Positions 340 to 54,420 of a stretch of DNA of 64,000 nucleotides are shown in pieces. Below the pieces are notes generated by a model, which was not told where the DNA came from, searched no databases, and saw nothing but the letters and a program-made list of their open reading frames with translations. Source of the stretch: Zygnema circumcarinatum SAG 698-1b (lineage: Eukaryota; Plantae; Zygnematophyceae); contig CM074816.1 of the NCBI GenBank assembly GCA_037447605.1, positions 2,322,525 to 2,386,524 of the forward strand, read 5' to 3'. A program made the position numbers and the translations under genes. Position 1 is the stretch's first letter; every line of letters starts with the position of its first letter.

Positions 340-425
340 GGCAATCCATGAGCCCCCCTCCTCCAACTCCACCTCCCAGCCCCCCTCCTCCGACTCCACC
401 TCCCAGCCCCCCTCCTCCAACTCCA
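340..425. repeat. About 27-bp C-rich tandem repeat, 3 copies
   Basis: Unit agcccccctcctcc(a/g)actccacctccc; absent from the homologous spacer at 30520-30545. Confidence 0.75.
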
Positions 426-672
426 TGGTTTGAGGCCGAATGTGATGATTCAATTCGTGGTGCTTTGAAAAGTGTGCGCGTATCCTTTTGAAGCAAGTGC
501 GCATACCCATCCCGAGCTCGGCGCCGGGCGGTGCGCGCACACCCCTCAGAGGCGGAGAACAGTTCGCTGCCAGTTCCGCGTCGCAGCGCACGGAGGGATT
601 GGCGGAGGCCACATGGCGGAACACGGCTTCGGCAGTTCCGTTGTGATGTACGGACTGGAAAAGCTGGGACCA

Positions 673-1486
673 CAGTCAACAGTCCTCATATTTTCGCCAT
701 GGTTTTGGCAAATATGAGGCGAAAATATTAGGGGGAGTCAGACCTTGACCATCGCCCGCGGAATTGGAAGATTCCGCCGGCGGAAAGGTATTGATTTCGA
801 TTGCAGAATTCGGTTCGGAAACTGCGGCTCCCCCGAACCTGTCTGTCCCGTCCGTACTTCGAAATAGGTTACAAAAATGAGATATAGGCTCGGCGCCCGA
901 GCCTGTCGAACGTCCATTTTTGGCGAAAAAGGCCTGCCGTACAACGCGGAATTGGCCCGACGGGCTCGCGGAATTAGTTTGGCGATGGACAAGGTCTGAC
1001 TCCCCCTATTGATTTTTGCAAATAGATGGTTCGTGTTACCAATTGACGGGTGGTATTGTTAGAGTTCATGTTGGACCGTACGTATCGTACCGTACCATAT
1101 CGTACCGCATCGTACCGTGTCGTTCAGTATCGTGTCGTATCGGAGCCAAGAAGGAAGGAAAGACGAGCGAGCGCCTCTTACGGTATCGTGTCGTATCGGA
1201 GCCAAGAAGGAGGAAAGACGAGCGAGCGCCTCTTACGGCGGCACTTGCGGGAAGATTCGGTGAGTTTTGCTGAAGCCCGTAACGGCTAGTACAGGAAGTA
1301 CGGAAAGTACGGCTAGTACGACTAGTACGGTTTTGAGGGTTTCTAGGGTTTTAGGGTTTTAGGGGTACGAATAGTACGGGTACTACGGCTAACACAGAGT
1401 TACCGTACAAGAAGGTGGTTTCGGCAAAATCGGGGCGAATTTCTTGGAGACGCACTGTACAGGGAGGAAAATATGACTGTTGAATG
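673..1486. mobile_element. Tc1/mariner-like MITE with degenerate ends, carrying a nested MITE
   Basis: Ends cagtcaacagtcctcatattttc / gaaaatatgactgttgaatg are inverted repeats. The interior is homologous to 30820-31601 and (reverse complement) to 55654-56079. Confidence 0.6.
730..1007. mobile_element. PIF/Harbinger (Tourist-like) MITE, 278 bp
   Basis: About 27-bp TIR AGGGGGAGTCAGACCTTG(A/T)CCATCGCC; 3-bp TSD ATT (727-729, 1008-1010). The empty site aaaatattgatttt is seen in the homolog near 30870. Confidence 0.85.
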
Positions 1487-4400
1487 CATACGGACTCAGG
1501 TCGTCCGTATTGTACAAGTGATTGCGGCGACTGTACCAAGTCGAGCGGCGGTGAGGATCCGATTCTGCAGCGAATCGAGCCACGTGGCATGCCACGTGTT
1601 GGCTAGCGAATGGGAACGCCGCCCCATCGACATTGGATCGTTAATAGCGCGCTTAACGCGTACGGACACTCTACGACGTCGCTCGCAGCCACGAACTTGA
1701 GGGAAGCCAGGAGTCAACCAATTGTCGCGTGGCAAAAAATGCGGCGTCATTCCCACGATGTCGTTTTCGAAATCTCTCAAATTTCGGTAATAAATTTTCG
1801 CTTACAAACTTGAGAGATCGGTTTGTCTTTTAGCTCTCGACCGGGGTCGAAACTTTTCAATTTCCGCGACGTTCCACGTGTGCAGGCTGCGCGGTGCTTT
1901 TCCCCTGACCGCGGGCAGCCGGGACTGACCGCGTCAGCCTCGTTGTCGTGTCAGAGGAGGGAGAGGCGGTGAGGGGAAGCCACGGCTGGGAGTGGGAATG
2001 GAGACGGAGTGAGAGAGGGAAGGGGTGAGGGAAAGGGAGAGGGAGTGGGAGGGGGAGAGGGAGGGGGAGAGAGAGGGGGAGGGGAGAGGGAGAGGGAGAG
2101 GAGGAGGGGGAGGGGGAGAGGGAGAGGGAGAGGAGGAGAAGGAGGGGAGGAGGTGGGGGAGGGGGGAAGGGACAGAAAGAGCGCGAGTGGGGAAGTGGGA
2201 CGACGAGAGAGTGAGAGGGAGTGAGCAGCTAAAGCAAGTGGGGCAGAGGCTTTAAAGCTCGAGGAATTTGAGCCGCGGCAGAGGGCGGTGTTGCACGATA
2301 AAAGGAGGGCGTTGAAGGTAGAGGGGTTGCGGGACATACGGGGGAGGGGTCCAAGCAAAGCAATGCACTTTTTTTTTTTTCGTAAAGTTGAAGTATCGTA
2401 GCATTGACTTGTGCTCTGCTGTTCAGGGCTGTTTGGTGTTCCTGTTGAAAGATTCTGCCGCCATGGCGAAGTGGGGCGGCTTCGCAGCTCTGTTCATGCT
2501 CGCTGTGACGTGTGGTCGAGCTCAAGGTGGGTCGGATGCGCTGGAGTGCGAGGAAGGGAGAGAGGGATGGAGGGAGGGAGGGAGGGGGAGAGGGGAGAGA
2601 AGGGAGAGAGAGAGGGAGGGAGGGAGGGAGGGAGGGAGTGAGGGAGGGAGGGAGGGAGGGAGGGGGGGGAAGTGGGAAGTAGAGGAGGAGGGTTAGCGGA
2701 CATGGAAGCTGGGAGTCTTGGCGTCGGTGGGAGTGGTGAAGAATGTGTGGGAGAGGTTGAAATTGGAAGAGTAACCCGCGTTCAACCTGTATCCTGCTGT
2801 TCAGCTCAGGAAATATATCTCTTCAATTTGAGTTGATCTCACATTGTCATTGCTGTCTTCGTTCCAAGAAGAAAAACTTGTGTGCTTTTTGTGGTTTCTC
2901 TGCTTGTAGTCTTGTTGCATTCTTGTTTCAGAACATCTAACTCCGCCTCTGCTAAGCTTAATGGAAGACATTGGTCCCAATTCAGGTCCATTTTGGAAGA
3001 ATCACTTGCTCCTGTCGCTATGTTTGGCTTTGTAAGAAAATGTGTTGGGCTAGCAGATGCGTTTGACTATGTTCCCAATATTGAAATAGACGGGAATGAC
3101 TTGGCATCTGTCAGTGTTTCTTCTTCGGGGGAAGGCGCCCAGCTCTGCGTCCAGTCTTGCCAGTGTGTCTGTTTTTCTATAGAGTCATACAACTACTTTA
3201 CTGATACCGTNNNNNNNNNNGTATCGTGTCGTATCGGAGCCAAGAAGGAAGGAAAGACGAGCGAGCGCCTCTTACGGTATCGTGTCGTATCGGAGCCAAG
3301 AAGGAGGAAAGACGAGCGAGCGCCTCTTACGGCGGCACTTGCGGGAAGATTCGGTGAGTTTTGCTGAAGCCCGTAACGGCTAGTACAGGAAGTACGGAAA
3401 GTACGGCTAGTACGACTAGTACGGTTTTGAGGGTTTCTAGGGTTTTAGGGTTTTAGGGGTACGAATAGTACGGGTACTACGGCTAACACAGAGTTACCGT
3501 ACAAGAAGGTGGTTTCGGCAAAATCGGGGCGAATTTCTTGGAGACGCACTGTACAGGGAGGAAAATATGACTGTTGAATGCATACGGACTCAGGTCGTCC
3601 GTATTGTACAAGTGATTGCGGCGACTGTACCAAGTCGAGCGGCGGTGAGGATCCGATTCTGCAGCGAATCGAGCCACGTGGCATGCCACGTGTTGGCTAG
3701 CGAATGGGAACGCCGCCCCATCGACATTGGATCGTTAATAGCGCGCTTAACGCGTACGGACACTCTACGACGTCGCTCGCAGCCACGAACTTGAGGGAAG
3801 CCAGGAGTCAACCAATTGTCGCGTGGCAAAAAATGCGGCGTCATTCCCACGATGTCGTTTTCGAAATCTCTCAAATTTCGGTAATAAATTTTCGCTTACA
3901 AACTTGAGAGATCGGTTTGTCTTTTAGCTCTCGACCGGGGTCGAAACTTTTCAATTTCCGCGACGTTCCACGTGTGCAGGCTGCGCGGTGCTTTTCCCCT
4001 GACCGCGGGCAGCCGGGACTGACCGCGTCAGCCTCGTTGTCGTGTCAGAGGAGGGAGAGGCGGTGAGGGGAAGCCACGGCTGGGAGTGGGAATGGAGACG
4101 GAGTGAGAGAGGGAAGGGGTGAGGGAAAGGGAGAGGGAGTGGGAGGGGGAGAGGGAGGGGGAGAGAGAGGGGGAGGGGAGAGGGAGAGGGAGAGGAGGAG
4201 GGGGAGGGGGAGAGGGAGAGGGAGAGGAGGAGAAGGAGGGGAGGAGGTGGGGGAGGGGGGAAGGGACAGAAAGAGCGCGAGTGGGGAAGTGGGACGACGA
4301 GAGAGTGAGAGGGAGTGAGCAGCTAAAGCAAGTGGGGCAGAGGCTTTAAAGCTCGAGGAATTTGAGCCGCGGCAGAGGGCGGTGTTGCACGATAAAAGGA

Positions 4401-5304
4401 GGGCGTTGAAGGTAGAGGGGTTGCGGGACATACGGGGGAGGGGTCCAAGCAAAGCAATGCACTTTTTTTTTTTTCGTAAAGTTGAAGTATCGTAGCATTG
4501 ACTTGTGCTCTGCTGTTCAGGGCTGTTTGGTGTTCCTGTTGAAAGATTCTGCCGCCATGGCGAAGTGGGGCGGCTTCGCAGCTCTGTTCATGCTCGCTGT
4601 GACGTGTGGTCGAGCTCAAGGTGGGTCGGATGCGCTGGAGTGCGAGGAAGGGAGAGAGGGATGGAGGGAGGGAGGGAGGGGGAGAGGGGAGAGAAGGGAG
4701 AGAGAGAGGGAGGGAGGGAGGGAGGGAGGGAGTGAGGGAGGGAGGGAGGGAGGGAGGGGGGGGAAGTGGGAAGTAGAGGAGGAGGGTTAGCGGACATGGA
4801 AGCTGGGAGTCTTGGCGTCGGTGGGAGTGGTGAAGAATGTGTGGGAGAGGTTGAAATTGGAAGAGTAACCCGCGTTCAACCTGTATCCTGCTGTTCAGCT
4901 CAGGAAATATATCTCTTCAATTTGAGTTGATCTCACATTGTCATTGCTGTCTTCGTTCCAAGAAGAAAAACTTGTGTGCTTTTTGTGGTTTCTCTGCTTG
5001 TAGTCTTGTTGCATTCTTGTTTCAGAACATCTAACTCCGCCTCTGCTAAGCTTAATGGAAGACATTGGTCCCAATTCAGGTCCATTTTGGAAGAATCACT
5101 TGCTCCTGTCGCTATGTTTGGCTTTGTAAGAAAATGTGTTGGGCTAGCAGATGCGTTTGACTATGTTCCCAATATTGAAATAGACGGGAATGACTTGGCA
5201 TCTGTCAGTGTTTCTTCTTCGGGGGAAGGCGCCCAGCTCTGCGTCCAGTCTTGCCAGTGTGTCTGTTTTTCTATAGAGTCATACAACTACTTTACTGATA
5301 CCGT
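1127..5304. other. Apparently exact 2084-bp direct duplication (1127-3210 = 3221-5304) flanking a 10-N gap; most likely an unmerged contig overlap
   Basis: The ORF track is identical at offset 2094. The copy starts at a 54-bp tandem repeat and breaks mid-exon at the gap. Confidence 0.8.
3674..3693. promoter_or_regulatory. Paired G-box/ABRE-like motif upstream of gene copy 1 (also at 1580-1599 in the duplicated segment)
   Basis: CCACGTGGCATGCCACGTGT, identical to 31648-31667 upstream of copy 2. Confidence 0.4.
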
Positions 5305-8300
5305 GTTCCAAAATTGGCTGAAACGTGCAACTGACATTCTCGTGGTTAGTGGCTCTTTTTACGACACATACGTTCTCACGAATGAGTCTCCAAAGTCAAC
5401 TCCTGAGTCGGTTTTTGATATCTATCAGATAGTGTCTGCCATGGTTTGAGGATTCTGAACGCTTTTGAACTCCAGCTCCACTAAATGGTTCTTTGAACTG
5501 ATTTCAGTGCTCACTAAATGCAGCTAAATCAAACTTTCTTCTGTACAATGCACATCGATGGACGAATACAACCGCAAACCTTTCTTGTCAGTACAAAAGT
5601 GGAAATTTCTCGGAATATTGCTTGACGATTCATTGCTTGATTACTTCCAAGCGCTATCCTTTGGAATCAGTCCTGAATGCGTCCGTCCCCCCACTCTCTA
5701 TCTGGTTTGGGTGTTGAGTGTTGTTTTCAGGGCTTGGTTCTTACCCTTGTGCCGGACTCTTGAACGAATATGACCCCTATGAAAAATTTGACTCAGAAGG
5801 GTTTGACTTAAGTGGAGAACTTGTAAGCTCCGTCGCCTATTGCAAAACCGCCTGCGACCGTGAGTGCAGGTGCCTCGCCTTCGCAGTCCAAGATCAAGGG
5901 GACGGGAGCTTTATTTGCGCAACAAAATACTATACTCGCCCTGTCTCAGAATGGGCGAGAAGACCGACCCGGGTACTGTTCAGGCGGCGAGATATGGGTA
6001 TGTGTCCTATGCCAGCTCAAGATATCAGTTCTAACACAGGTGCAGAAAATCTGTCCAGCATCGAAGGTTTTAGGTTTCGTTCAGCCAGACATGAAGTTTA
6101 ATAAAGGATAAGAAATAGATATCCAATACAGTCAGCAGCACGAGAAAGTTAGAAAGGAATGACTCTTGAAGCACACCACACTCTGACACACTTTTCTGTT
6201 TTGGTGCTTGATAGCTTGTTGTGAGAGCTTGACTAATTTACTGCAAGACTAAACCGAATTAGTTTCATACTTCAAGATTAATCTGCCCTTACACGTTGGA
6301 ATCAACGGGTATTGCAGGCAATTTGGCTCTCAACAGGCCCGCTTTTCAGTCCAGTACCTATGCAGATTGGCCATCTTTAGCACTGAATGCTGTGGATGGC
6401 TTCTCTGGCGATGGGAACTTCTTTACGGCTTCATGCACCCACACTCTTAGCGGTTCACCACAATGGTGGAAAGTGGACCTGTTGACCTCCACGGTGGTGG
6501 GCTCGGTGATGCTGTACGGCCGGACGGACTGCTGCCAAGACCGGATGAACGGAGTGACGGTGTGGGTGGGCGATGGCAACTCCACCTTCAATGGGGACGG
6601 GAATCAGGAGTGTGACCCCGGCAATGTCTTCGCATATTCAGACACAAGCAGCGGCTTTCCCTTTGTTAAGAAGTGCGCTTCTCTGCGCGGACAATTCGTT
6701 TGGGTGTACCCCAGTAATTTTAATCCTGTCACTTTATGTGAAGTGAAGGTCTTTGGAGGCTCTAGAGGTACGTCTTCCGCTCTTAATTTATACCCAAACC
6801 AATATCCAAACCATCCAAAATAATAACATGCATTACATATATTCTTCTGTCCGCACCTCCTTTTGCAGGAGAATGCGAGCTAACAGAACCATCGTTCCTT
6901 ATAAAAGTGATATTCTGTTTTGTATTTGTGCTGTAAAGATTGCCGGTTATATGGGCTACATGGTTAACTGATATGACGATTCTTTTTTCTTCTCTTTGTG
7001 CATGAATCCACATTGCAGAAAACTTGGCTCTGAACAAGCCTGCCTCGCAGGTAGACGATCCAATTCACGCTCCTGCACTGAGGGCTGTGGACGGCTCCGA
7101 TGGTGGTGGTGACTTTAATAGCGGTACATGCACCCGCACGAACAATAGCCCGTCCAGTTGGTGGAGAGTGGATCTGCTTGCGACCGTGAGGGTGGACTCA
7201 GTCGAGTTGTGGAACCGCTTAGACTGTTGTTCAGATCGCCTGAACGGAGTGATGGTGTGGATCGGCAGCAATGACGCCACATGGAACGCCGACGGAAATG
7301 AGGAGTGTGACCCCAGTAACGTCTTTCAATACTCAGACACAAGCAGCGGCTTTCCCTTTGTCAAGCAGTGCTTCCTGTTAGTTGGACGATTCGTTTGGGT
7401 GGTCATCAACAGCGGCCAGCCCCTCACATTATGCGAAGTGAAGGTTTTTGGATCGATTTTAGGAGCGTTGGAAGGTACATATGGCATCCTCATAATCACT
7501 TTTGAGAACCAAAATAGGTGAAGAAAAGCTAGTCCAACCATCAATGGATTAGCACTGGTAGATAGCAGAGCTGATTACACGAAGGTGAATAAAGAACAAG
7601 CCATAAGCTACAGTCAATAAAAAACTTTATGAAAAGACTCGCTCGTGCAGTATATCACACTCCGACACACTTTTTCTGTTTTGGTGCTTGATAGCTTGTT
7701 GTGAGAGCTTGACTTTTTTCCTGGAAGACAAACGAATTGGTTTCATACTTGAAGATTAATCTGCCTTTACACGTTGGAATCAACGGGTTTTGCAGGCAAT
7801 TTGGCTCTAAACAGGCCCGCTTTTCAGTCCAGTACCTATGCAGATTGGCCATCTTTAGCACTGAATGCTGTGGATGGCTTCTCTGGCGATGGGAACTTCT
7901 TTACGGCTTCATGCACCCACACTCTTAGCGGTTCACCACAATGGTGGAAAGTGGACCTGTTGACCTCCACGGTGGTGGGCTCGGTGATGCTGTACGGCCG
8001 GACGGACTGCTGCCAAGACCGGATGAACGGAGTGACGGTGTGGGTGGGCGATGGCAACTCCACCTTCAATGGGGACGGGAATCAGGAGTGTGACCCCGGC
8101 AATGTCTTCGCATATTCAGACACAAGCAGCGGCTTTCCCTTTGTTAAGAAGTGCGCTTCTCTGCGCGGACAATTCGTTTGGGTGTACCCCAGTAATTTTA
8201 ATCCTGTCACTTTATGTGAAGTGAAGGTTTTTAGGAGCTCTGAAGGTAGGCCTTGAACTCTCCCTAAGTAGTCCTCTCTTACTTCAACCCAATCTTGTTT

Positions 8301-11300
8301 GTAACAGTGATGGTAGAAACAATGCTTCACCGCCTCTCCCTGGCATAGGGAATGTTTGTCACAAGGGAAGTATAACGTGAACTTGAACTAGTGGCGGAGA
8401 GTGGTTTAACTGAAAATTCTGATATGAGTATGTGCGTCTGCTCCTTCACTGTGTTCGGCTGTGCAGGAACATGTGTAGGAGGTCCAGCAGAAACGTACGA
8501 ATATGTTCCAAATAAAGTTGCTAATTTGAATGACATTGGCAGCGCTTTAGTTTCTTCTGCGGGAGACTGCAAACAGCTTTGCACAAGCTTCTGCCAATGC
8601 GTCGGTTTTTCAATAACTCAAGGAATCGGTTATGGAGACGGAAGCCAGTTCCAATGCTGGCTGAAATATGCAATAGACTCTCCCACAGATAGTAGCTCTG
8701 TTCACACATACATACGCCGAAGTAAGTCACCATACCTTGGTTTGAGTCCTTGGCTTTGCTCGAGTAGTTAGTGGTTGAAATTGTTGAGTGCTCTGACCAC
8801 GACTGACTCTTTGCCTTCACCAGAAGAATCATAATTAATGTCCTTGATCTTATTTTACAGTACAAGAAAGTGGTAAGGCTCATATTTCGTACGTATGTCC
8901 AACTCAGGGTAATACACTATTCAAAGGAAGTTATTCTTGCGAGAGTTGTTGTCAATAGTCTAGCTGTGTGTATGCTTCAGAAATTGGCGAATTTTATGAT
9001 CTTTTTGTTTTCGTAAAACCTTGCAGCGTACTCTTTCCCTCCTCCAAGACCGCCATCAAGTCCACCTCCTCCTCCTCCTTCTCCTCCTCCTCCTCGAAAA
9101 CAGCCTCCACCTCGGTCTCGTCCGCCCCCTCCAAGGCCGCCTCCCTCTCCGCCTCCTCCGCGATCGCCGCCACCTCGACCTCCCCCAAGGCCGCCACCGC
9201 CGCCGCCGCCGCCACTTTCTCCGGAAGGTAATGGAAAGTTATAACTATTGTTGCGTTCCTCTGTTCTTTTAATCTCTATCTTTTGTTTGGTTGCACAGAC
9301 ATTCGTCATCGTTGAACTAGTACTACCTTTGAGGAAAATCATTCCTCCTATATGAGAAAGGTTTGCTGGCTGCGAGCTCGAAGCATCACGGGGATAGCAA
9401 CCATACAAAGTGCGGTGTTCAATAGTAAGAGGGAAGAGAGCACAGTCACTCATCGTTCTCGTAGAGATCTGGTGCTTGAGCCTGCTCTCCCGATGCCTAT
9501 TGAGCTTACTGTGTGGCTTCAAGCTAGTCTAAGAATTTCTCAATGGCTGTCTCTTCTGGCAATTGGTACAGTCGTTGCTCTTTTGGAGTTCAAGAGGGCG
9601 ATTGCAAACGACGTCCTTCGTAACTGGAAGCTGCAGAGCTCTGTATGCGACTGGGAAGGTGTAGGATGCACCACAACTTTGCCGAAAAGAGTCAACAAAC
9701 TGTGAGAAATCCTTCCTTGTCAACTCTTCATTCTTCAAATGTGATTTTTAGGGATGGAGGCAATGCTTATTTTGGTTATTTAAGAAATAGAAGTACAAAC
9801 GTGGATTGCCTGTCGCTAAACAAAACGAACTTTGATCCAAAAAAGGAAAATATTGACTCAGAATTATTCAAGTTTTGTCCTTTGCTGTAAAAATCGTGGT
9901 GACTTATCAGAGAAGGAAAATCCTACTTAGTTGAAGAGTCTCCTTGGTAATGAGTCTGTGTGGAGGTCATGAAGGGAACAAGAGAGAGACAAACAGAAAA
10001 GGCTCTGCGCTTTCAAGACCAAAAAAAAAAAAACAGGAATACACCTAAGATCTAACGCCTGACGAAGAGTATCAGCTATTATGTCTGAAGTGAAGAAACT
10101 CTTATTGAGAGAAACAGAACTTTCCAAGACAACCATCTGAAGCGCGCGTGTCGGTTTTGACAGCTTGTTGCCCGGAGGTAATCTGGTCAGTCCGCTGAAC
10201 GGCACGATCTCCCCCTCCATCGGCAGCCTTGCAGCTTTGGAAGAATTGTGAGCACCTCTTCCCCCTGTCGATCTTCGATAGCCAACTTTGGCATAGGGAA
10301 GCGAATAATTTCGTGCATGCCTGCAAAATGTGTACTGTGACCTAAACCTGTCGTATGAAAAGTACTCTACGAAGTTTTTTTTCCATATTTGTACCTTCTA
10401 GCTACGAAAATGCCACTACCTTATGCTCAGATGCACATTGTGTGCAATGTCGCAGGGATTTGTCGAACAACAAACTCAGCGGCGTCATTCCGGACACACT
10501 TGGCCAACTTCAGAATTTGAAAAAATTGTGTGTGATATTCACCTTTGGCCATTGTTTTGTAATGGAAAAAGTGTGATATGGTCTGCGACAAAGGACGAAT
10601 TGGACGTCTGCCTACCATTGAGCCTATTTTGTGTTCATTTCTCAAAATCCGCCGCTTTGATCCTGTGCTTGCTTTGCCAGGATTATTTTTTATGTGACTC
10701 ATTTGTTTACTACGGGTGCCTTTCGCTATGGCAGGACTTTGTCAAATAATGATTTGACGGGCGTTATTCCCTCTTCCTTCAGCAACCTCACCTCTCTGAC
10801 TGAGATGTAAGTGCCGAGTTGACTGCCCGACCAAGATGAGTGCCCACGTTTCTGCTATGTGTGTTAAGAAAAGCTTGCAACCTCCAACTGTTTGATCGAG
10901 TGGAATTTCAATCCTGCGGATAGGATATGAGTCAGTGCTTCAAAGGAGTATCAACCCTATCCACTGAAACGGATCGGATTGACATTGACTTGTGGCTGCT
11001 TTCGTGCAGATCATTGTCAATAAATCGGCTTACTGGGGGGATTCCCACTTCCTTCGAAAATCTAAAGTCTCTTTCTATACTGTGAGTGTCATTCTGGTCT
11101 TCACTAATTTACTCTGCTGTTTCAGAAAATACTGTTATTTTTGTCATCATGTAATAAAAAGACATAGTTCATCAGCTGTGCGGCAACTAACTGGATGCAG
11201 ATAGCTTAACACAAGTGATCGCAATTGACCAAACGACCAAGCATTCTCGTCGGTCAGTTCTATGACGGAATGAACAGAGAACTGGAGACTCTAATGAGAG

Positions 11301-14300
11301 AGGCTTGACGATGAGAGGCATGAGAGGTTTTGGATTCAATCATTTCTTACTCACGTAAGAGTTTTGTGTGCATGGTAGCTCAAAGTTTTCGAAAACTAGG
11401 AGTTGATTGATGAAGCATTTAGTCGAGGTTTCCTAAACATATGGGGCGCACCATGTCTTTGGAAGGCTCAGGTGACTGATTGTTCGTATTTTGACTCTTA
11501 AGTAGAACATGGTGGGTCCACAGAAACTTCGGAAGCAATCAGCTGAGCGGCCCAATCCCTGCTTCAATTGGCACACTGAGGGGCCTCAAAGAACTGTGAG
11601 TCGTTCTGCTTGAATCTGTGTCATTATCGCAATAATCTTATCCACGGCTAGAAAGGGATTCTGTGCATTTACACGAAAATGAGGAAACCTCGAATACTTG
11701 TCACCTTTCTTGTCTTGATGTCGGTGCACAAAGTTTCGCTGCAATTTGCAATGGCCAAATTTGTATCCTTATTTTTCTGTTGTGTCTTCTCCGCGGCTGA
11801 TGTGGCAGGCGCTTGTCAAATAATCTATTGACTGGAACCATTCCAACAACTTTTGGAGGGCTCTTATCCATTCGGAGCCTGTGAGTTAGCTAAACAATAA
11901 ATTCATTGATCTGAATGACAGTCGAGATAGATGAAGACTAGAAGCCCATGATGACGAGGTACAATGAAAATTTAGAATGTAGGATTGTTGCACTTGGCAT
12001 TTTCCTTTTCAGCATTAACTGGGGTCCTCTCACTGTCACAATACAATCACTAGAATTGAATACGGGCAACAAGACTTCAGGAAGTCTGTACACTATTGGG
12101 ATTTGAACAAACTGTTTATGTTAATTTTCCTGCAGGTCGTTAGCACAGAATCTTCTCATCGGCCCAATCGTGTTTGACTTCGGACTACTCGAAGACGTGT
12201 CCTTGAGCTTCGACAACAATTACTTTTCGGGTGAACTTTCGATTACTGTGAATGGCAAGACACAGAACTGCGCTGGAATTGACAACAACTGTTTTGCTGA
12301 TTTAGATGCGAACTGCACCGATCAAATACAAAGAGGTGACGATTCCTGCAACAACTTCTGCAATGCAAGACAGCCGCAGGGCGCGTGTGGTGGGAACGGG
12401 TACTGCTCTTATAATGGAAGCCAGCCGACCTGCACTTGCGATATTGGGTACAACATCGCCTCAGATACGAAGAGTTGTGTTTTTGGTGAGATCTCGACTA
12501 TGACGTCGATTTCGGTGTGGGCTATATTGAGATTCACATTCTTCTCGCTTGTAGCCCAGTAGAGGGTAAATGTTTGAGGATTTTCCAAAATGAGCATCTA
12601 AGATGTCCCTTTTGCAAAGAAGGTATGCGATGCAGCTTCATTCCACATTTCTAAGCAATCTGGGGAAGGCCGCGCGCACCCAAATGTAGGTAAATAAAAG
12701 GATAATTGATAGCTTTGCATCCATAAATCTATTCTGCTTGTGCATTTCGCGGTTGGGTTATCTTCTTATTTACTGTTGGAGGAACCCATAATACACAGCA
12801 GAAATCCTTTCTGAAATTGTTGCATTGCTCCTGTCGATCTTTAGGGGGACGAGGGTTCGGCTTAAACACGAGCCTCCCCATCACACCATATGCAAAACTG
12901 AACCGCTATTTTCGATATGCGACAACGGGATACTTGAGAAGGAGGAGCGGCAAGGCGTCGTGGCAGGTCGCCATCGCCTGGAATTGGACGGAGGAAGGAG
13001 CCGTCCAAGGCGTCAAGGATCAAGGAAGCTGCAGTGAGTGCTCAGCTCCTGCTCCCGCATTGGACAGACCTAACTCATTATGGCTGTATTGCCATTCTAC
13101 AAATATGAACCAGGAGGACATGTATCTCAAAATCATTCTACATTGCATGCACTTGGTCCTCAAAAACCTTGGCAGAACTTTTCTATAGAGATGTTTTACT
13201 TATCTTTAGTTAGGCAGAGACATCGGGTCAAACTGGTTTTCGCCGTTTGAGGCATTTTAGAGAAGGGTGCTGACTTAGGACATGGAGAACTCAAATGCAT
13301 GTCAGGATTCATGTGGCTGTTTTCTTGCAGGCTCTTGTTGGGTATTTTCTTCTATATCTGCCATTGAAAGCGCAATTTTCATCGTTAACGGTGGAAACCC
13401 TCCGCCCCCGCAGTTGGCAGAGCAGCAGCTCCTGAGCTGCTCCCCCGCCGGCAAGACCTGCGCGTCCGGGGGTTGGCCCCAGGAGGCGCTTGACTATGCC
13501 GCCAACAACGCCCTCACTTTAGCATCGAATTTCACGGGGCAAACGAGCTGTGGAAAGGTACAAAAAACGTCTGCTGAAATAAAAGCTGGCCAAGGAGATA
13601 GGAGAAAGAGTGACCTGCACAGCAGCAAGCTACCTTTGTAGCAATTTCTGCTCATCCTTCTTTGACAACCAGTCTGCGAAAAGGAAAAGAAGAGCACAAA
13701 CTGACGATGCTTGGATTCCTTGAGTTTTCTCTCTCCTTCATGGCAGGACATTGTGCACAATTAGGAAAAACGTCTTCATAAAGATTTATTTGACCTATTA
13801 TGGGTGTGTAACTTGCAGGGTGATAACAGGTTTAAAATTACATCGTTTGAGCAAGTGGCCTTCAACGGCTGGCTGGGCTTACTGCTCATTCTGCAGCAGC
13901 AACCGGCCATTGTGAATATTGAAGCGAGCAGTTCCAACTTCATCAACTACAACGGAGTAATGACAATATAAAGCTCTTCTGTCCCTGCTGGAAACTCATC
14001 GATTCTTTATTTCATTTTGATCCTCTGCATATAGGAAACGACCTTGCTTCTATTTTCCCAAGACGCTCACGTGATTGACTCTTTATTGTTGGCATCAGAG
14101 ACGTCACCTACTAACTTCTTTTCCGATATTCATCTGGCACCACTCATTTTTATAGCAAAATCCGTTGCGTTGCAGGGGGTGTTTGACGATGAAGACTGTT
14201 TTTCTAACGGAGTGGATCACAGCGTGATGGTGGTCGGATACGACTTGAGTGCGGATCCACCATTTTGGATCATCCGCAACTCGTGGGGGCGCAACTGGGG

Positions 14301-17300
14301 CGAGCAGGGCTACATGCGCCTCAAAATATCCTCCGGTTTGGGGACATGCGGGATCAACAGCCTTCCGGCACTCATGCCTGTAGTGAAGGCTGCAGGTGAG
14401 AGGGAGTTGTCGTTTTCATTCACGATCTTCAACTTTCATCACCGTGGCAGTTGACGTTGTAGCTTTCTAGCCTGGCTCCAACTAACTAGCTTGCTTTTAG
14501 CTTAGCGTGAACCACGCTAATGAGCTGATGGTACACTCAACATGCTTGCAATGCGTAAGGCTAAGACTGCCCTTGTGATTGTCCCATCAATTCTAATCAA
14601 CCATCAGATGAAATCACACAGCTAAACGGCCAGCTAGTCGAGAGGATGGCGATATTTCTCTAGCTCATTCGAATGAAAGCATGTACTCTATAAGTTTTTG
14701 GTGTTTCGCGACCATTACACCGCTCCCTTCCCAGATTCTGACAAGTAGTAATTATTGATCTTGATCGTACTCTCGTGTCTGGTGGATGCAGACAATGATC
14801 CATGCTTTATGAGAAACTATGCCAGTACAGTCCTTATGACCACAAATGGACCAGGTACAATGAACCCGTGCGGAAATGGTGTGTGTACTGTAAATGGTAC
14901 TACGAACCAATGTCTCTGCTCGGCGGGATTCGTGGCAGTGATCAACAGCGACAACTCGCAAACATGTGCACCACGTGGGTGGTCAATTCCATTAAGTAGA
15001 TGTTCATGTCCGTTCATGGTTGTTCAATGAACTAACCTTCGAATTTCTTTTTAATCAAATGGTATACCACTCCGTACATCTCTGACCAACGCGTATGCAT
15101 GTAACTAACAAGACCAATAACGTATAGTGTAAAAGCTTTTTCACCTCTGATTTCCATCCTATTTCCAATGCAAGCTCTAATCAAACGATCAGGAAAGCGC
15201 TTAATTGTTGCTACATGCGATTTGAAGTACTAGTAAACAACCGTATGAGTGTCTCCTGTGGAGCAGTCTCCCCCTGCACCTTCGCTGCAAGCAACCCCTG
15301 CGGCGTGGGGACGTGTCTCAATGCGGTGGCGACACCTGGCGCGTACGCCTGCGCCTGCCCGCTGGGATATGCCGCCGACTCGCCGGATGGCATCCTCACA
15401 TGCGTGCCAGGTCAGATCTGCGTTCTTTCTAAAACTGATAAAAATTCTTAAGCAAGGTCATTATTTCAATTTCAGATAAAGGGAGCGTTACAGCGATGTG
15501 ATCGAACGAAAATTCCTTCTTGACTTGAAGAACATGGAAATGACCCGAATTATGACGACACTACTACCTAAACAATCACACGAATGTACTATCACTTTTT
15601 GCCTCTCCTTTTTTCTAGGAAAGGAACTAATCGTTTCTGAGGCCATTCTAAACTGAAAGCTCTGATTGGTTTTGGTGTCGCCTTCAGCCGCAATAGCTAC
15701 AGGATTGCAGTCCTTTACTGTACCAGCCGGCGCCAACATGAGTTGCTACGACATATTTATCTTGTATGGCATCAAGAACGACGTTTTCTCATCCCAAAAT
15801 AAGGTCAGTGAGAGAGCGCACATCCTCTCACAACAACTTATCGTCTCACTTTCCTTGGATCTACATCTAGTAAAAGCCACGGGTCGGTGTTTCTAGCCTC
15901 TTTCTTCGTCTAATACGCTCGTATTGTGCTCATATTTGGTTCGATATTTCACAATCTCTTGTGCGTTTTTCAGATGCTGAACTGCCAATTGCCCTTGCCG
16001 GGAGGTACGGTGGTGAATGTCACCAATTACGGAAACTGCTCTGTGGTGTACGCTGTCAATGAGGTCAGCCTCCGTACTGTCTCCCGCACTTTTTCTCGTT
16101 AAGATCTCTTCTTGATTTTTTCCCTCCAACTTCAATGTTTCACTCATGATCGAAGGTGCAGCTGACAGTTACCTTCTCAAATTTTGCTTCCTTCAGGGTG
16201 ACACGTGTGAGGCAATTGCAGCATATTTCAACGTTACATCGATATATGGTCCAGGATCTCCCAATCCGGACTTAAGCTGCTCGCAGCTTCGACCTTTCCA
16301 GCAGGTACAGCCTCTGAACGTGGAAGGAGTTCAGCTCAATGTTTAACATGTTCAGTTCAGTGAATTCTACTTATAAGATAAGAGCCCTCATTTGCACAAA
16401 AGCGTGGAACATAGCTTAGCTTGTGTGCTCAAATAACTTCAAAATTTAACGTTATTTGCTTAATAGCACTGCTTCTTTGCACGCTGCATACCCAATGGCC
16501 AAAGATCCGTAATCTCGCATGCTACAATCCAAAAGTCACAAAAAAAGAACAGATTTATTTAAAGAATCTGATAAAATTCTGGGAGCAACGCGAAGTATAC
16601 GTACCTACTAAATCTTTTCGTCTTTAATCGTTCGTAGTCCGAGGAGCAGTGTTACATCATGAAACGACGTTAATACTTGCAAAGTATGAATGTCGAATAC
16701 TCTTGCAGGTCTGCATTCAGAGGGGAGCCCTTGTCTATCCGGGGCCATGCACGAAGACGTACGATGTGCAGCCCGAGGAGTCGTGCTTCTCCATCATAAA
16801 GAACAAACTCGATGGAGACATCAAAAAGTTCTACACGCTCAATCCTGGGGTGTACTGCGGCAAGCTGCTGCTCTCCACGAGCGGCAGCGCTTCAATTGGG
16901 CAGCATGTAAGAAATGGACAAAGAAAGCGCAGAAAATTATCGCAAGGTCATGCACGTGTCAAACTCGTTACAAATATAGTTTGAATTTCTTTTTGAGTTG
17001 GTTTTAAATCATTTGTTCGACTTGGTCGGAGTGAATGAAGATGTGGTTAGCTTATGTGGTTGAATTGGGTAAGTGGCGGTCTCGCCAATTGACGAAGTAA
17101 CTCATTTTTTTTTGTTCTAACGTCAGAACTATGTCCGGCCTGCATCCTGCAGGTGTGTCTGAAAGCTGCGAATCTTGGCGCCAGTGCGGACTGCAGTGGC
17201 AACACGTACACATTGAAGGCAGGAGATAAATGCGCCAATCGTAAAACGTGCTTCAACAAGAAGGAGAGTTTTAAAAAACTCAATGGCTTCCCATGCACAA

Positions 17301-17359
17301 AGACAGCCTTGAAAAAAATGAAGGCTATTTGTGTTCCTAAGATTAGCGCATGCACTTAA
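4557..17359 (+). CDS. Secreted multidomain cysteine protease, copy 1: SP - PAN - 3x F-type lectin - PAN - Pro-rich - LRRNT/LRRs - EGF - C1A - 2x EGF - 4x LysM (about 1628 aa)
   Basis: GT-AG exons: 4557-4620, 5731-5997, 6318-6767, 7019-7474, 7796-8245, 8467-8721, 9027-9227, 9572-9701, 10164-10247, 10456-10527, 10735-10806, 11010-11081, 11524-11595, 11809-11880, 12136-12485, 12845-13033, 13331-13557, 13819-13956, 14176-14395, 14792-14974, 15267-15410, 15688-15803, 15974-16063, 16197-16304, 16709-16906, 17153-17359. All phases are compatible and the total is 4887 nt. N-terminus MAKWGGFAALFMLAVTCGRAQ is signal-peptide-like. Confidence 0.8.
5130..5381 (+). pseudogene. PAN/Apple pseudo-exon with both splice sites mutated
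   Basis: Aligns to PAN exon 8467-8721 (KCVGLADAFDYVPN vs TCVGGPAETYEYVPN). The expected acceptor reads AA and the expected donor reads ATGAGT; QCWLK has become QNWLK. Confidence 0.6.
5731..5997 (+). CDS. PAN/Apple domain exon (gene copy 1)
   Basis: EGFDLSGELVSSVAYCKTACDRECRCLAF...FICATK Cys pattern; phase 1-1 exon. Confidence 0.65.
6318..8245 (+). CDS. Three F-type lectin (fucolectin/FTP) domain exons
   Basis: NLALNRPAFQSS...CTHT...WWKVDL...RTDCCQDR...LCEVKVF. Repeats 1 and 3 have the H-x26-R-x-D-x4-R motif; repeat 2 has R in place of H. Confidence 0.9.
8467..8721 (+). CDS. PAN/Apple domain exon (gene copy 1)
   Basis: YEYVPNKVANLNDIG...DCKQLCTSFCQCVGFS...QCWLK. Confidence 0.7.
9027..9227 (+). 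CDS. Extensin-like Pro/Ser/Arg-rich stalk exon (67 codons)
   Basis: FPPPRPPSSPPPPPPSPPPPRKQPPP...PPPLSPE; phase 1-1. Confidence 0.7.
9572..12485 (+). CDS. LRRNT cap, plant-specific LRR array and EGF-like domain
   Basis: ALLEFKRAI...NWKLQSSVCDWEGVGC cap; five 72-nt exons such as DLSNNKLSGVIPDTLGQLQNLKKL; ACGGNGYC...CTCDIGY EGF. Confidence 0.9.
12845..14395 (+). CDS. Papain-family (C1A) protease domain, 4 exons
   Basis: VKDQGSCSSCW (catalytic Cys), EQQLLSC, GGWP, VDHSVMVVGY (His), WIIRNSWG (Asn), GYMRL. Confidence 0.95.
14792..15410 (+). CDS. Two EGF-like domain exons
   Basis: NPCGNGVC...CLCSAGF...TC and NPCGVGTC...YACACPLGY...TC. Confidence 0.8.
15688..17359 (+). CDS. Four Cys-containing LysM-type domains
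   Basis: YAVNEGDTCEAIAAYFNV...NPDLSCSQL; YDVQPEESCFSI...FYTLNPGVYC; YTLKAGDKC...FKKLNGFPC; FTVPAGANMSCYDI. The last two listed are more divergent. Confidence 0.75.
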
Positions 17360-17755
17360 ACACGATGCTGCATTAGGAACTCTCGTGTTTGGGTAGCACC
17401 TACGGAAAGATAACAAGAGGGTGCTTTATGACTGCTGGGGTATCAAACTCCTCATTTTTATGAAGGCATCGTGCTCGGCCGGTTCATGACTTTTTGGTTG
17501 AAGACGACTGAACTGCTTATTGCATTCGTAACGTGCACTCGCTGCCCGGGGATGCACCTCTCTGCCTTCTCCTGCCTCTGCGCCTCTTTTTGATCAACGA
17601 GAGGGTGTTTTGTGACTTCTGGGTAAACTTGGGGTTCTCAACCCGGCGTTCAAAAGTGCTCGTGTTCATGGAGGCATCTTGCTCGGCCAGTCCCGTGCCT
17701 TCTTGGTTGAAGGCGATTGAACTACGCCTTCTATTTGTAGTGTACAATAGGGGTA

Positions 17756-18448
17756 CAGTCTAATCACGTTATAGTGACTGTGTCGGTCCCCACATGTTTG
17801 TGTCACTATATCGGTAATGACCCGTTTGTCATTTCACATTTATAGTAACAATGATGTTTGATTGAACTCACGATGGCAAGGCCATCAAATGTACATGGAG
17901 AAAATCGACATAAAGAACCAAAAGAGGCGGTCACAACGGACATAAGGACAGAAAGAAAGCCTTGAAACGGAAATCAACTTCTAGGCGCAACAACACGGCA
18001 CTAGAAGCAGCCGCGAAGGTCGCCAATGTGGGGCGCAGTACGCGCCCCACATAGTAACAATGTTATTAGATATGTTTTTGCGGTATATCCGTACGCCTTT
18101 GATACCGTACATTGTACTTTTTGGGCAGTCGTCACGTGGGTAGGTGTGTACGAACCCTAGTGAACATGTGTACGGACAAGTTGATATGTACGGTCAAGTC
18201 GATATCTGACGGTATTAGTCGATAATGTGTACGGTCGTAATATATTTGTAACGCATATTCCAATACGTGGGTGGATAATATCGACACTGTGAACATATAG
18301 TATCAATTAGGGCTTTTCAGCGTCGTTATATCCGTAATGGCGTCACTACTGGCGCAGGATCTGCAGTGGTGCAATTCCGTTCCCGGAAAAAAAGTCAGTA
18401 TATCCATGCTGTTCTCATAAACAGTGTCACTATAACGTGATTAGACTG
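17756..18448. mobile_element. Tc1/mariner-like non-autonomous element, 693 bp, inside LTR D
   Basis: TIR CAGTCTAATCACGTTATAGTGAC; TA TSD at both ends. Confidence 0.85.
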
Positions 18449-21400
18449 TATTGGCTATCGTAGTACACTTTACGGTCCTTAGCTTTTGTTGGCGGTCCTT
18501 GGCAGATTCGGTCACAGTCTGAACAGAGCGCTAGAGTGCTGTTCTTAGTGAGAAGACGACAGGTTTAAATAGGACACGTGGAGGGGGGCGATAGGCCGCG
18601 CCACCAGTGGAGTCCACTTAGTACGATAAGTGATGTGTAGACACGTAGCGTGCGACGATTGGTCGCGCGTCTGCGAGCTAGCTTAGTACGGATTATTGGA
18701 GGCGCGAAGGGGCGCGGAAGGTTCGGAGCGACGGAGGAGGTTTTTGTCCTGGCGACATGGAGGTGGCACGCGGTGGCACGCGGTGGAACGTGGAGTTGCT
18801 TCAATGGCTAGTACATAGTGTTGTAAATTAAGGCCCGGTCCGTCTCACTCACTTCACTCACTGCCATGTTTGCAATCTGAATCAAGGAAAGCTCTCAAGT
18901 GCACACACTGAAAGATAACTGAAATCAAACGAGCAAAAAACACCGTAAGGAAATGTAAGGAGAAAGCACCCGGCCTCAAAACTCCTTAATAAAGTAAAGG
19001 AAGTTACAAGCACAAGTTTCAGCCCTCAGGCTTCTACTTCAGCTCTGACTAACTCCCGACNNNNNNNNNNAAACTTAATGAAGCCATTATCTCTCAAGAG
19101 GTTGTCAATTTTGCCATACCAGATGCGTGGAGCCTGTTTCAGCCCATACAGGCTTTTCACAAGCCTGCATACCAAGTGTTCTTCTCCCTTCTTCACTGTC
19201 CCTTCCGGCTGGTCCATGAAGATTTCTTCCTCCAACTCTCCATATAAAAATGCTGTCTTTATGTCCAGCTGGTGAACATGCATCCTTTCAGCTGCTGCAA
19301 TGGATATCAAAGATCTGAGGGAGCTAAACTTGACTACCGGAGCAAACGTTTCTGTGTAGTCAAGCCCATATTTCTGGCTAAACCCTTTTGCGACCAGCCT
19401 AGCCTTGTATCTATCGACGCTCCCATCTGACTTCCTTTTCACTTTGAAAACCCATTTGCACCCTATAGCCTTCCTCCCCTTTGGCAACTCTACCAGCCGC
19501 CAAGTCTTGTTCTCTTTCAAGCTACCCAACTCACTCTCAATGGCTACTCCCCATTTCTCAGCATCTGCCCCCTCTACAGCTTCAGAGAGGGTTTGGGGTT
19601 CACCGATGGTCGCCATCAAGACTTCAGCGACGCTGGCAAATTCAGCAGAGTCGGTCGGCATCCTCCATTCGCTTGCTCCATTTACCTCCCACTCGGAAGG
19701 GGGGTAGCGCCTGTTCGGTCTCCGGAGGCGAGCTCCTTCCTGCTGTACGGCCACCCTGGTTAGCGGCACTCTTGTCGTTACTGGTACAGCAGATAACAAG
19801 GGAGAAGGTACGGTAGGTCGTTTGACCGAAGGTCGGTCGAGTGACTCGAAAATGTCACTCAACGACCTCTCTCGTTGCGCCACGTCGTCGTGAACAGCTG
19901 TAAGTGTCGGTGAGTCAATCTCCGTTGATTCCGAATGATTTGAAGGTGCCGCGCCGCCAGGCGCATCGTCACCGTCCGATTCAGAATGCGTTGGTGACGA
20001 GGTCTCCGCTAGCGCATCTCCGCCGTTCGGTTCGTTGTCTCGCACCACTGAATCGCCACCGTCTGATTCGTAGGAGATTTCAAATTTGTCGTTTTGCGAG
20101 AGTTTGACCTCCAAGTCCATTCGGATTTCAACCGGAGGATTTTCTTGGAATCTAACATCTCGACTCCTCTCTACCTGTTTGGTTAAGGGATTCCACACCC
20201 GATACGTGGGACTATCCTCATTATAGCCAATCAGGTACCCGAGAGTGGATCTACTCTCGAACTTGGAATTTCTCCTGGGCTTCAGTACGGTCATGAAGCA
20301 CCGTGCTCCCCATACTCTGAAGTAAGCCACTGAAGGCTTCTTTCCGCTCCACACCTCCTCTGGCACCCTGTCCTGGAGTGCTCTCGTCGGGCACCTATTT
20401 CTGATGTGAGCTGCTGCCATTACTGCCTCACCCCAGAAGGTTAAGGGAAGTGGGGACTCACTCATCATGGTCCTCACCATGTCCCCAAGCGTGCGGTTCA
20501 CTCTCTCCGCAGCTCCATTACTTTGAGGTGAGTAAGGGGCTGAAAACTGATGCTTCATGCCAAAAGCCTCGAAGTGATCTTTGAAATTCTTGGAGATGTA
20601 CTCCCCTCCATTGTCTGAACGAAGGGACTTAACCTTCAGTCCGGTTTCTCTCTCCACTTCCACCTGCCACCTTTTAAAGACATCAAAGGTTTCAGCTTTA
20701 CTATCAATCACCCTTACCCAGATCTTCCTAGAGCAGTCGTCTAGAAAAGTGATGAAGTATTTCGCCCCTCCTCGGCTGGTGGGAGTGATGGGTCCACATA
20801 AGTCCGTGTGGACCAACTCGAGCCGTTCCTTGGCTCGGCTGTCCTCTGAATTCCGGTGGCTGAACGGCAGTCGGTGGGCTTTGCCAGCGAGGCAGTCCTC
20901 ACAAAAGCCAGCCTCTGATTCCTTCATCTGCACGTCAATTCCTCTCACAAGGCGTTTGTCCACCAGTTTCTTCAGACTTTGGTAGCCGAGATGGCCCATT
21001 CGGCGATGCCACAACTTGGCCGCCGGATTTTCAGAGAGAGCATTGACTTGGTGTGAGAGGACCCCTCCTCCCTTTAAGAGGTAAAGGCCGTTCTTTTCTG
21101 TGCCTCTCAAAACAACCTTCCCGGTTAGTTTTTCCACCACCTTGCACTCCTCTCCATCAAACCAAGAAACATATCCTCTTTTGCCAAGCTGGCTCACGGA
21201 AATGAAGTTGCTTTGAAGACCAGGGGTAAGTAGAACGTTGCCCATGGTAACGGTTCTTCCCTTCTCTCCTCCATGGGTGATTAATCTCACGGATCCTCCT
21301 TGAGTAACTTTCACTCCTTCTCCGGTTGCTGCGTAAACGGATCTTGCCGCTTCCAACGTTCGCAACTCTGCAAAAGAAGACTTTTGGGAACACATGTGTT

Positions 21401-21967
21401 TAGAAGCTCCAGAATCAATTATCCAAGGCAGTTCGGGTTTCCCGGACCTGCATGGACCTTCTCGAATCCCACCCACGAACTCCTTGTTATGCGCTTCTGA
21501 GCTCATCATCAAGTTTGTCTCGCTTGCTCCATCTTGACAAGCCACAGACTTGTGGCCCTTCTTGCCGCACTTAAAACACGTTCCACCGAAAGTAGGCTTC
21601 TTCTTCTTGCTCGGATCTCCACCTGAAGACTCCCCTTTCTTCTCGGGTCGTCCCTTGGTCTGGTAGCAGTCCGTTGACAGATGTCCACGCTTGCCACACG
21701 TGTAGCATGTAGGGGGAGGACGATCTCCTCCATCTTTCTTCCCTTTGCTCTTGCCGAATTTCGCAGCCTGGAATGAGAGGACACTATCTGCAGTTCCTTT
21801 CCCACCCTCTAGCAACATTTCTGCCTCTCTGATTCTCCCTTTGATTTGCACCATAGACATGGGCAAGCTAGCAAGGTGAGTTCTTAATGACTCTACAACT
21901 CTTTCATATTTGCTTGGAAGTCCTATTAAGAAGTGATGAATCTCGCTAGGCAAGGTTATAGGCTGCT

Positions 21968-24338: not shown

Positions 24339-24515
24339 CTGCTTAGCAGCTATGCATTTCTGCATCAAGCTATCATATTTTACAAAGTACTGAGTGAGTG
24401 TGTCCCCCTTCTCCATTTTGCATGCTCCTAATTCTGCATACAAATTTACAGGTAAACCACTTTCTGCTACTTCATAAACTGACTGCAAACTGCTCCACAT
24501 AGTTGCTGCACATTT

Positions 24516-31601: not shown

Positions 31602-31647
31602 TACCAAGTCGAGCGGCGGCGAGGATCCGATTCTGCAGCGAATCTCG

Positions 31648-31667
31648 CCACGTGGCATGCCACGTGT
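31648..31667. promoter_or_regulatory. Paired G-box/ABRE-like motif upstream of gene copy 2
   Basis: CCACGTGGCATGCCACGTGT, identical to the copy 1 promoter motif. Confidence 0.4.

Positions 31668-52329: not shown

Positions 52330-54420
<2,091 letters not shown>

Follow-up and report, generated by a model that had tools for sequence, protein, structure and literature searches.

Tandem genes for a predicted secreted papain-type protease with unrelated N-terminal heads: a probable head-cassette replacement in a streptophyte alga

Gene organisation of the locus

The window, the whole 64,000-nucleotide stretch of DNA that was analysed, contains two neighbouring genes, A and B, which from their sequences are predicted to be tandem paralogs encoding a secreted stalk-LRR-papain-EGF protease of a streptophyte alga. 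All gene features described below lie on the forward strand. The order of the predicted protein parts is signal peptide, variable binding head, Pro-rich extensin-like stalk, plant-type LRRs, EGF knot, papain-type protease, EGF and LysM-like modules. The gene parts were analysed exon by exon rather than as joined spliced proteins; in the exon chains of both genes the reading frames were open with GT-AG sites, and contained neither stops nor stop-creating junction codons. Several splice sites are weak, among them the donor of the first NIDO exon (TGC/GTGCGC) and that of the first PAN exon, and their placement relies on conservation from one NIDO module to the other or on phase logic alone.

Comparison of the window with itself using BLASTN revealed colinear homology flanking both heads. 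Approximately 1.9 kb upstream and 8.5 kb covering the end of the stalk and the body are common to A and B, introns included. The upstream homology (424–4257 and 30531–32234) falls into five blocks with 75–83% identity with gaps and 85.6% gapless, while the homology of the stalk and body (9038–17556 and 39592–48791) rises from 82% to 92%. A further matching segment is found at 17850–17995 and 49326–49470. The two genes are adjacent, in the same orientation and colinear at the DNA level through both introns and intergenic flanks, as is characteristic of a tandem segmental duplicate. The spacer between them (18463–30505) is transposon-derived, with four N gaps, large inverted matches and a copia-type reverse transcriptase at 27683–29128 (RVT_2, E 2e-70).

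At 1–279 lie the 3' end and downstream block of Z, a third member of the family located upstream of A. Positions 26–133 resemble the 3' ends of A and B (42–133 is 80% identical to 17345–17432, and 26–133 is 79% identical to 48568–48667), and positions 144–279 are 91% identical to 17587–17723, which belongs to the block downstream of A. These matches indicate a probable tandem array of at least three genes, of which A and B are neighbouring members.

The upstream region of A spans 424–4396 in the assembly. Positions 1127–3210 are a 100% copy of 3221–5304 (2,084 bp) across the N gap at 3211–3220. This repeat is an unmerged contig overlap, an assembly artefact, so that part of the A upstream region and the first exons are present twice and the true length of the region is approximately 1.9 kb. 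The 5' junction of A is covered by two overlapping contigs.

The shared body and its relatives

The body of A (9228–17556) contains LRRNT_2, LRR exons, an EGF-like knot, Peptidase_C1, EGF and LysM-like exons, and is homologous to that of B (39767–48791), introns included. The Peptidase_C1 matches gave 47.7 and 68.4 bits, and the GSCW, VDHS and NSWG motifs are present in both genes. Over 862 codons of the body the comparison of A with B gave a dS of 0.105 and a dN of 0.051, with the catalytic Cys, His and Asn retained; the body of both copies is under moderate constraint.

Twenty-seven family proteins were retrieved with region 700–1200 of P0020. They were mostly from Closterium species and mostly without head and stalk; in no exon was any of them more than approximately 55–65% identical to A or B, and neither head was matched by any of them. 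The best match of the family-specific exon 12125–12559 among representative proteins was just 37% identical. A search with the first NIDO exon found no homologous protein within its length window, which left out long proteins, and the alignment search with family proteins and A exons was dominated by generic LRR proteins and gave no match in the window at an E value below 1e-10. The literature search found no paper on the LRR-papain-EGF-LysM family and nothing relevant on exon shuffling in streptophyte algae.

The heads of A and B

The start codon and signal peptide of A are encoded in its first exon (4557–4620), whose end is in phase 1 (donor AAG/GTGGGT). The signal peptide is followed by two putative PAN modules, three F-type lectins and a third putative PAN module, in this order. 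The first two PAN/apple-like exons lie at 5004–5324, where the donor is uncertain, and 5731–5997; their PAN_2 matches (17–18 bits, E 0.004–0.006) are below the cut-off of 21.1 bits. The third, which is the final head exon (8467–8721), gave a PAN_4 match of 25.5 bits against a cut-off of 27, and the cysteine pattern of the PAN exons is consistent with this fold assignment. The three single-exon F-type lectin modules at 6318–6767, 7019–7474 and 7796–8245 matched F5_F8_type_C_2 with 51–54 bits (cut-off 27.8), and their identity as F-type lectins was given by FBP32 (3cqo, E 3e-37) and eel agglutinin (1k12, E 4e-17). The exons of modules 1 and 3 are 98% identical and both contain the fucose-binding motif H-x26-R-x-D-x4-R, while module 2 has an arginine in place of the motif histidine. 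Every exon from PAN1 through the three lectin modules to PAN3, as well as the stalk exon, is phase 1-1.

Head B has two NIDO modules of five exons each, to which its signal peptide is fused. The exons of module 1 lie at 32602–32867, 33166–33212, 33705–33879, 34437–34552 and 35704–35835, the first of these holding the start codon and signal peptide joined to the start of NIDO and the last ending in phase 1. Module 2 (36151–36358, 36654–36700, 37175–37349, 37955–38070 and 38718–38849; 678 nt in total, phase 1-1) is a tandem copy of module 1, with introns 89% identical. Both modules matched the NIDO profile (PF06119) colinearly, exon by exon, over profile positions 40–91, 94–131 (26.0 and 26.4 bits, cut-off 25) and 142–184. 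The introns within a NIDO module are of mixed phase.

The first-pass annotation had each head starting and ending in phase 1. This holds for both ends of head A, where a phase-1 intron marks the signal-peptide boundary, and for the end of head B. The start of head B departs from it: signal peptide and NIDO start share one exon with no phase-1 intron between them, and the second NIDO module alone is 1-1 within this head.

The 5' and 3' breakpoints

The last sequence common to the two upstream regions is a 20-nt block, GGGCGGTGTTGCACGATAAA, located at 4377–4396 in A and at 32555–32574 in B, where it closes the upstream region at 30531–32574. It consists of GGGCGG(T/C) followed by GTTGC(A/G)CGATAAA, with 2 of the 20 positions differing between the genes. 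The block is confined to these two sites in the window, barring the artefactual copy at 2283–2302, and 0 chance matches are expected. It had been described previously as part of a shared core promoter; in B it stops just 27 nt before the ATG and may therefore equally be a shared 5' leader.

Beyond the block the two genes are unrelated, including the signal peptides, in agreement with the first-pass annotation, for which residual homology through the head region would have been contrary evidence. Comparison of 4397–9026 with 32575–39400 gave no similarity between the heads, with a best E value of 0.41 by tblastx and 1.9 by word-7 blastn. GA-rich tracts lie on either side of exon 1 of A (4040–4330 in the upstream region and 4637–4800 in intron 1), and another lies upstream of B (32010–32500), containing the N gap at 32144–32153. 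An exchange within the GA tract was considered for the 5' side and rejected, since the tracts of A match only as low complexity and the block sits 3' of the tract.

The introns preceding the stalk exon are unrelated between A and B, and homology resumes inside the exon itself, as had been proposed. The Pro-rich, extensin-like stalk exon of A (9027–9227) has a length of 201 nt and that of B (39401–39766) a length of 366 nt with internal 81-nt repeats; both are phase 1-1 and contain SPPPP-type repeats. Unambiguous homology restarts at approximately 9130 in A and 39690 in B, leaving only about the last 80 nt of the B exon uniquely alignable, and runs to the end of the exon with 92% identity; beyond the exon it extends through the introns of the body. 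The earlier start given by BLAST (9038 and 39592) reflects the low complexity of the proline codons, which match in other registers too. The junction thus falls inside a low-complexity Pro-rich exon, and the two breakpoints are bracketed to a few bases on the 5' side and approximately 100 nt on the 3' side.

Divergence and gene conversion

The baseline identity of A and B was 85.6% in the upstream blocks (n=743) and 86.9% in the six slowest-converted introns of the body (n=1856; Fisher p 0.37). Identity over all the introns compared was heterogeneous, ranging from 86 to 97% (chi-square 44.7, df 9, p 1e-6), and this heterogeneity test alone is unbiased, the low and high intron classes having been picked after seeing the data. 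Some body introns contain patches with 94–97% identity, above the neutral baseline, and in this comparison of two sequences the pattern fits patchy gene conversion between A and B in both introns and exons. Since the upstream region and the slow introns are equally diverged, the baseline age of the body is that of the upstream region and only the patches are younger. The possibility that the upstream region is older than the body was rejected because it fails when the introns are taken singly.

Proposed origin of the two genes

The history that we favour, with a probability of about 0.7, is the duplication of the whole unit followed by replacement of the head cassette in one copy, a join in the stalk exon and patchy conversion. 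The duplication of one unit comprising upstream region, gene and downstream block would date back approximately 13–14% of neutral divergence. One of the copies would then have lost everything between the end of the 20-nt block and the mid-part of its Pro-rich stalk exon, and received instead the 5' part of another secreted head-on-stalk gene, with the leader, the signal peptide, the head exons and introns, and the front of a stalk exon. The 3' join may have arisen by recombination between two stalk exons with proline-codon periodicity; such exons are phase 1-1 and of low complexity, so that any in-register exchange preserves the reading frame. Internal duplication of modules (NIDO x2, F-type lectins 1 and 3) would later have enlarged the heads, and gene conversion over short tracts would have evened out parts of the body. 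As a result of the replacement, one LRR-protease-LysM effector would carry a different ligand-binding head in each gene, fucose-type lectins with PAN in A and NIDO in B. Cassette replacement after tandem duplication, as the first-pass annotation proposed, is supported in part, by the homologous flanks, the non-homologous N-terminal cassette with its own leader and signal peptide, and the equal baseline divergence on either side.

A less probable explanation reverses the roles of head and body: A and B would be older paralogs whose heads have long been different, and the likeness of stalk end and body would come from a later unequal crossover or a long gene conversion with its 5' limit in the stalk. 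Conversion patches are clearly present, many stretches of the body are 90–97% identical compared with 75–83% by BLAST upstream, and Z likewise shows mosaic identity, with 80% at its 3' end and 91% in the adjoining block. However, the six slow introns span the whole body, including the intron next to the stalk, and their identities of 86–89%, pooled at 86.9%, correspond to the 85.6% of the upstream blocks. We consider still less probable that the assembly is chimeric, with a NIDO segment from another locus, perhaps that of a relative in the family whose upstream block is similar, joined to the body of B in the Pro-rich exon or the GA tract. Join errors do occur in this scaffold, as seen in the 2,084-bp overlap and in a 242-bp exact repeat at the gap at 19061, and the flanks of head B, a GA microsatellite with a gap 420 bp upstream of the head and a stalk exon with 81-nt repeats, are sites where an assembler could misjoin. 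Against this, a gap-free contig (32154–49671) extends from the GA tract over the block, both NIDO modules and the stalk into the body, frame and phase are maintained through the junction exon, the BLAST match to the upstream region of A crosses the gap colinearly, and the two differences within the block are as expected of a diverged paralog.

Very improbable is a common ancestor that carried both types of head in one gene, with different parts then lost from the two copies. Neither gene was found to contain a relic of the other's head, the 5' leader and start codon are not common to A and B, and the signal peptide, also not shared, has a separate exon in A and is fused to NIDO in B. As each head has its own leader and signal peptide, differential loss in its simple form is excluded.

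Comparison with known modular proteins

The proposed replacement of a head cassette resembles the class 1-1 module shuffling of animal extracellular proteins, in which kringle, EGF and finger modules were placed before the protease domains of clotting and fibrinolysis (Patthy; PMC8001218), a process that is treated as restricted to Metazoa (PMC8001218). The modules at this locus are likewise autonomous, mostly beta-rich binding modules between phase-1 introns, a phase-1 intron follows the signal peptide of A, and modules have been duplicated, and probably exchanged, ahead of a protease with the frame intact. The 1-1 module boundaries were found for the exons PAN1 to PAN3 and the stalk in A, and for NIDO module 2 and the stalk in B. 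The differences are that the host is a streptophyte alga and the protease of the papain type, that a whole multi-module head was probably exchanged, leader and signal peptide included, that the join lies within a Pro-rich exon rather than an intron, and that NIDO is itself split by introns. The same phase 1-1 grammar is seen here in a young tandem pair of a streptophyte alga.

The stalk invites comparison with the chimeric extensins and HRGPs, such as the volvocine pherophorins, sexual agglutinins and GP1 and the plant LRX proteins, which carry one or more globular heads on a Ser-Pro(n) rod. These rods are repetitive and their length is altered by gain or loss of repeats, to which the repeat-bearing stalk of B corresponds, although the rod here is short and links the head, lectin or NIDO, to the LRR-protease-LysM body. 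LRX proteins have their LRR ahead of the extensin and lack a protease, whereas in A and B LRRNT_2 and the LRRs come after the stalk and are followed by the protease.

The position of the 3' join suggests that Pro-rich linker exons can serve as joining points for head exchange. A broader proposal, which we regard as tentative and rather doubtful, is that the Pro-rich stalk exon is a general recombination adaptor in this alga, by which heads are movable among proteases, receptor kinases and wall rods, the tandem pair being a fresh product with a donor traceable in the genome. Many secreted genes carry a head, a stalk and a third part, so exchange from stalk to stalk would move whole heads. If true, the plant lineage would possess in this adaptor an equivalent of the class 1-1 exon shuffling that is regarded as confined to animals. 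The pair itself offers a concrete case of head-domain exchange, clean and fairly recent, that probably proceeded by exchange of an exon block. It also provides two natural chimeras of one predicted protease, one with a lectin head and one with a NIDO head, with which the function of the heads could be tested.

Tandem paralogs with unrelated heads

The window was compared with itself using BLASTN, which revealed a tandem pair of units, A (424–17995) and B (30531–49470), both on the + strand and each carrying one paralog (genes A and B) of a predicted secreted stalk-LRR-papain-EGF protease. The upstream regions have five colinear blocks in common (424–4257 and 30531–32234), and unbroken homology, introns included, runs from the Pro-rich stalk exon to past the last exon (9038–17556 and 39592–48791). 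The first-pass annotation had proposed homologous flanks with unrelated heads between them. This pattern was reproduced in the dot plot, and the residual homology through the heads that would have spoken against it was not detected between 4397–9026 and 32575–39400 (best E value 0.41 by tblastx and 1.9 by word-7 blastn). No further copy of either head was found within the window. The matches of 26–279 to the 3′ ends of both genes and to their downstream block indicate that a third family member ends at the start of the window and that the array contains at least three genes.

On the 5′ side the alignment crosses a GA-rich tract, reaches TTTG..GGCAG(A)GGGCGG[T/C]GTTGC[A/G]CGATAAA and stops at 4396 and 32574, exactly at the gttgc(a/g)cgataaa where homology had been said to end. 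The 20-nt core (4377–4396 and 32555–32574) is confined to these two break sites in the window, apart from the artefactual copy at 2283–2302, with 0 chance matches expected, and the ATG lies 160 nt downstream of it in gene A (4557) and 27 nt downstream in gene B (32602). Its designation as a core promoter is doubtful, because a TATA-like reading would leave gene B nearly without a leader; it could as well belong to a shared 5′ leader. Long GA-rich purine tracts were observed upstream of both genes (4040–4330 in A; 32010–32500 in B, with an assembly gap inside), and a second tract in intron 1 of gene A (4637–4800) leaves exon 1 flanked by both.

The Pro-rich stalk exon is 201 nt long in gene A (9027–9227, + strand) and 366 nt in gene B (39401–39766, + strand), where it contains 81-nt internal repeats. 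The introns preceding it are unrelated and unique alignment begins only at ~9130 and ~39690, at 92%, which places the 3′ join inside this exon, where homology had been predicted to resume, introns included.

Gene models and domain identity

The sequence comes from a eukaryote other than human and its introns are spliceosomal; gene models were read exon by exon, relying on open frames and GT-AG splice sites. The head of gene A comprises, on the + strand, a signal peptide exon ending in phase 1 (4557–4620), two PAN-like exons (5004–5324, donor uncertain, and 5731–5997), three F-type lectins (6318–6767, 7019–7474 and 7796–8245) and a third PAN exon (8467–8721), and all exons after the first, through the stalk, are phase 1-1. 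The head of gene B, also on the + strand, consists of two five-exon NIDO modules with internal phases 2, 1, 2, 1, the first (32602–35835) ending in phase 1 and the second (36151–38849, 678 nt) being phase 1-1. The claim that each head starts and ends in phase 1 therefore holds for both ends and for the start of head A, but not for that of head B, where a single exon encodes the signal peptide together with the start of the first NIDO module.

The F-type lectins matched Pfam at 51–54 bits, striped-bass FBP32 at E 3e-37 and eel agglutinin at E 4e-17, and modules 1 and 3 contain the H-x26-R-x-D-x4-R motif. The middle module has Arg for the motif His (CTRT vs CTHT) and keeps R-x-D-C-C-x-D-R. The NIDO exons gave colinear matches to profile positions 40–91, 94–131 and 142–184; the PAN exons score below the Pfam cut-off. 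In the shared body LRRNT_2, Peptidase_C1 and EGF were above cut-off, LRR and LysM were weak per exon, and the protease Cys, His and Asn are present in both genes.

The stalk recalls the chimeric extensins of algae and plants; an LRX identity was ruled out by the reversed domain order and the protease. Protein searches reached no close relative, and the only public relatives of the body retrieved were unnamed Closterium-strain proteins and EukProt transcriptome or genome proteins. Most of these family members have neither head nor stalk, so that head and stalk look like a subfamily add-on. The head modules follow the same grammar as class 1-1 module shuffling, which has been described as restricted to Metazoa (PMC8001218). 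A literature search found no description of the gene family or of exon shuffling in streptophyte algae. The head exchange is an event of a known kind, exon shuffling, in an unusual lineage and an unstudied family.

Divergence of the two units

All identities were calculated without gaps. Between A and B these were 85.6% for the upstream blocks (K2P 0.16, n=743), 94.9% for exon-like and 90.1% for intron-like parts of the body. Intron identity was heterogeneous (chi-square 44.7, df 9, p 1e-6): for classes chosen after viewing the data, six slow introns pooled at 86.9% could not be told apart from the upstream blocks (p 0.37), whereas three fast introns pooled at 94.9% differed from them (p 2e-11). 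The introns of NIDO modules 1 and 2 are 89.1% identical. The simplest reading would be one whole-unit duplication followed by patchy gene conversion of the body, with modules inside the heads duplicating at about the same time or more recently. Across 862 codons, protein identity between the two bodies is 90%, with dS 0.105, dN 0.051 and omega 0.48, and both copies are under constraint yet diverging. F-lectins 1 and 3, compared over 6152–6776 and 7631–8254, are 98.4% identical in the exon and 87.7% in 146 nt of the preceding intron, a contrast that points to an older duplication of the module, followed by conversion centred on the exon or by strong constraint.

Origin of the head exchange

The exchange of head cassettes between the tandem paralogs is real and cleanly delimited. 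The first-pass annotation had the N-terminal cassette replaced after tandem duplication, with the stalk as a likely recombination point. The homologous flanks, the unrelated heads with their own signal peptides and the join inside the Pro-rich exon agree with this; the replacement, in at least one copy, of everything between the conserved block and the middle of the stalk, and its order, we infer. The incoming segment would derive from the 5′ portion of a different secreted gene with a head on a stalk. In a simple scenario such a fragment was inserted and a deletion then ran from its stalk exon to the resident one, which would yield exactly the observed hybrid exon, and the codon-periodic CCN repeats would keep the frame wherever an in-register exchange fell. 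It is unlikely that an ancestor carrying both heads lost a different one in each copy, since each head comes with a separate leader and signal peptide and neither gene was found to retain a relic of the other's head.

An assembly mis-join at head B is conceivable, given a gap 420 bp upstream, within the GA tract, and a 3′ junction inside a repetitive exon, but the head, both junctions and the body share one gap-free stretch (32154–49671). In unit A, 1127–3210 and 3221–5304 form a 2,084-bp direct repeat of 100% identity adjoining a 10-N gap (3211–3220) on both sides, which doubles the promoter-proximal region, exon 1 and part of the first PAN exon. This appears to be an overlap between two contigs left unmerged rather than a biological feature, so that both contigs cover the 5′ junction of A.

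Repeats and neighbouring sequence

The spacer between the units (18463–30505) is transposon-derived with four N gaps, and contains a copia-type reverse transcriptase ORF (27683–29128, RVT_2 E 2e-70), large inverted matches (18463–22407 vs 25099–30505, 70–97%) and an exact 242-bp repeat at a gap (18819–19060 and 29647–29888); the order and orientation of its pieces are doubtful. A 146-bp element, probably a small repeat or MITE, occurs once downstream of A (17850–17995) and twice downstream of B (49326–49470 and 49883–50027) in inverted orientation, at 92%. A 335-bp inverted repeat pair (55342–55676 vs 56391–56057, 97%) encloses ~380 bp, and parts of the element (55666–56064) recur colinearly upstream of A (1007–1474) and B (30835–31584) at 82–95%; 55342–56391 probably represents a foldback element or a transposon bearing terminal inverted repeats. 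Microsatellite of the (CA)n/(GT)n type, together with similar low-complexity repeats, fills approximately 1.8 kb at 52600–54400, close to an N gap (52031–52040). On the - strand, an exon-like ORF at 59008–59259 matches Hexapep (bacterial-transferase hexapeptide repeats, E 2e-9) and resembles a gene for serine acetyltransferase or another acetyltransferase.
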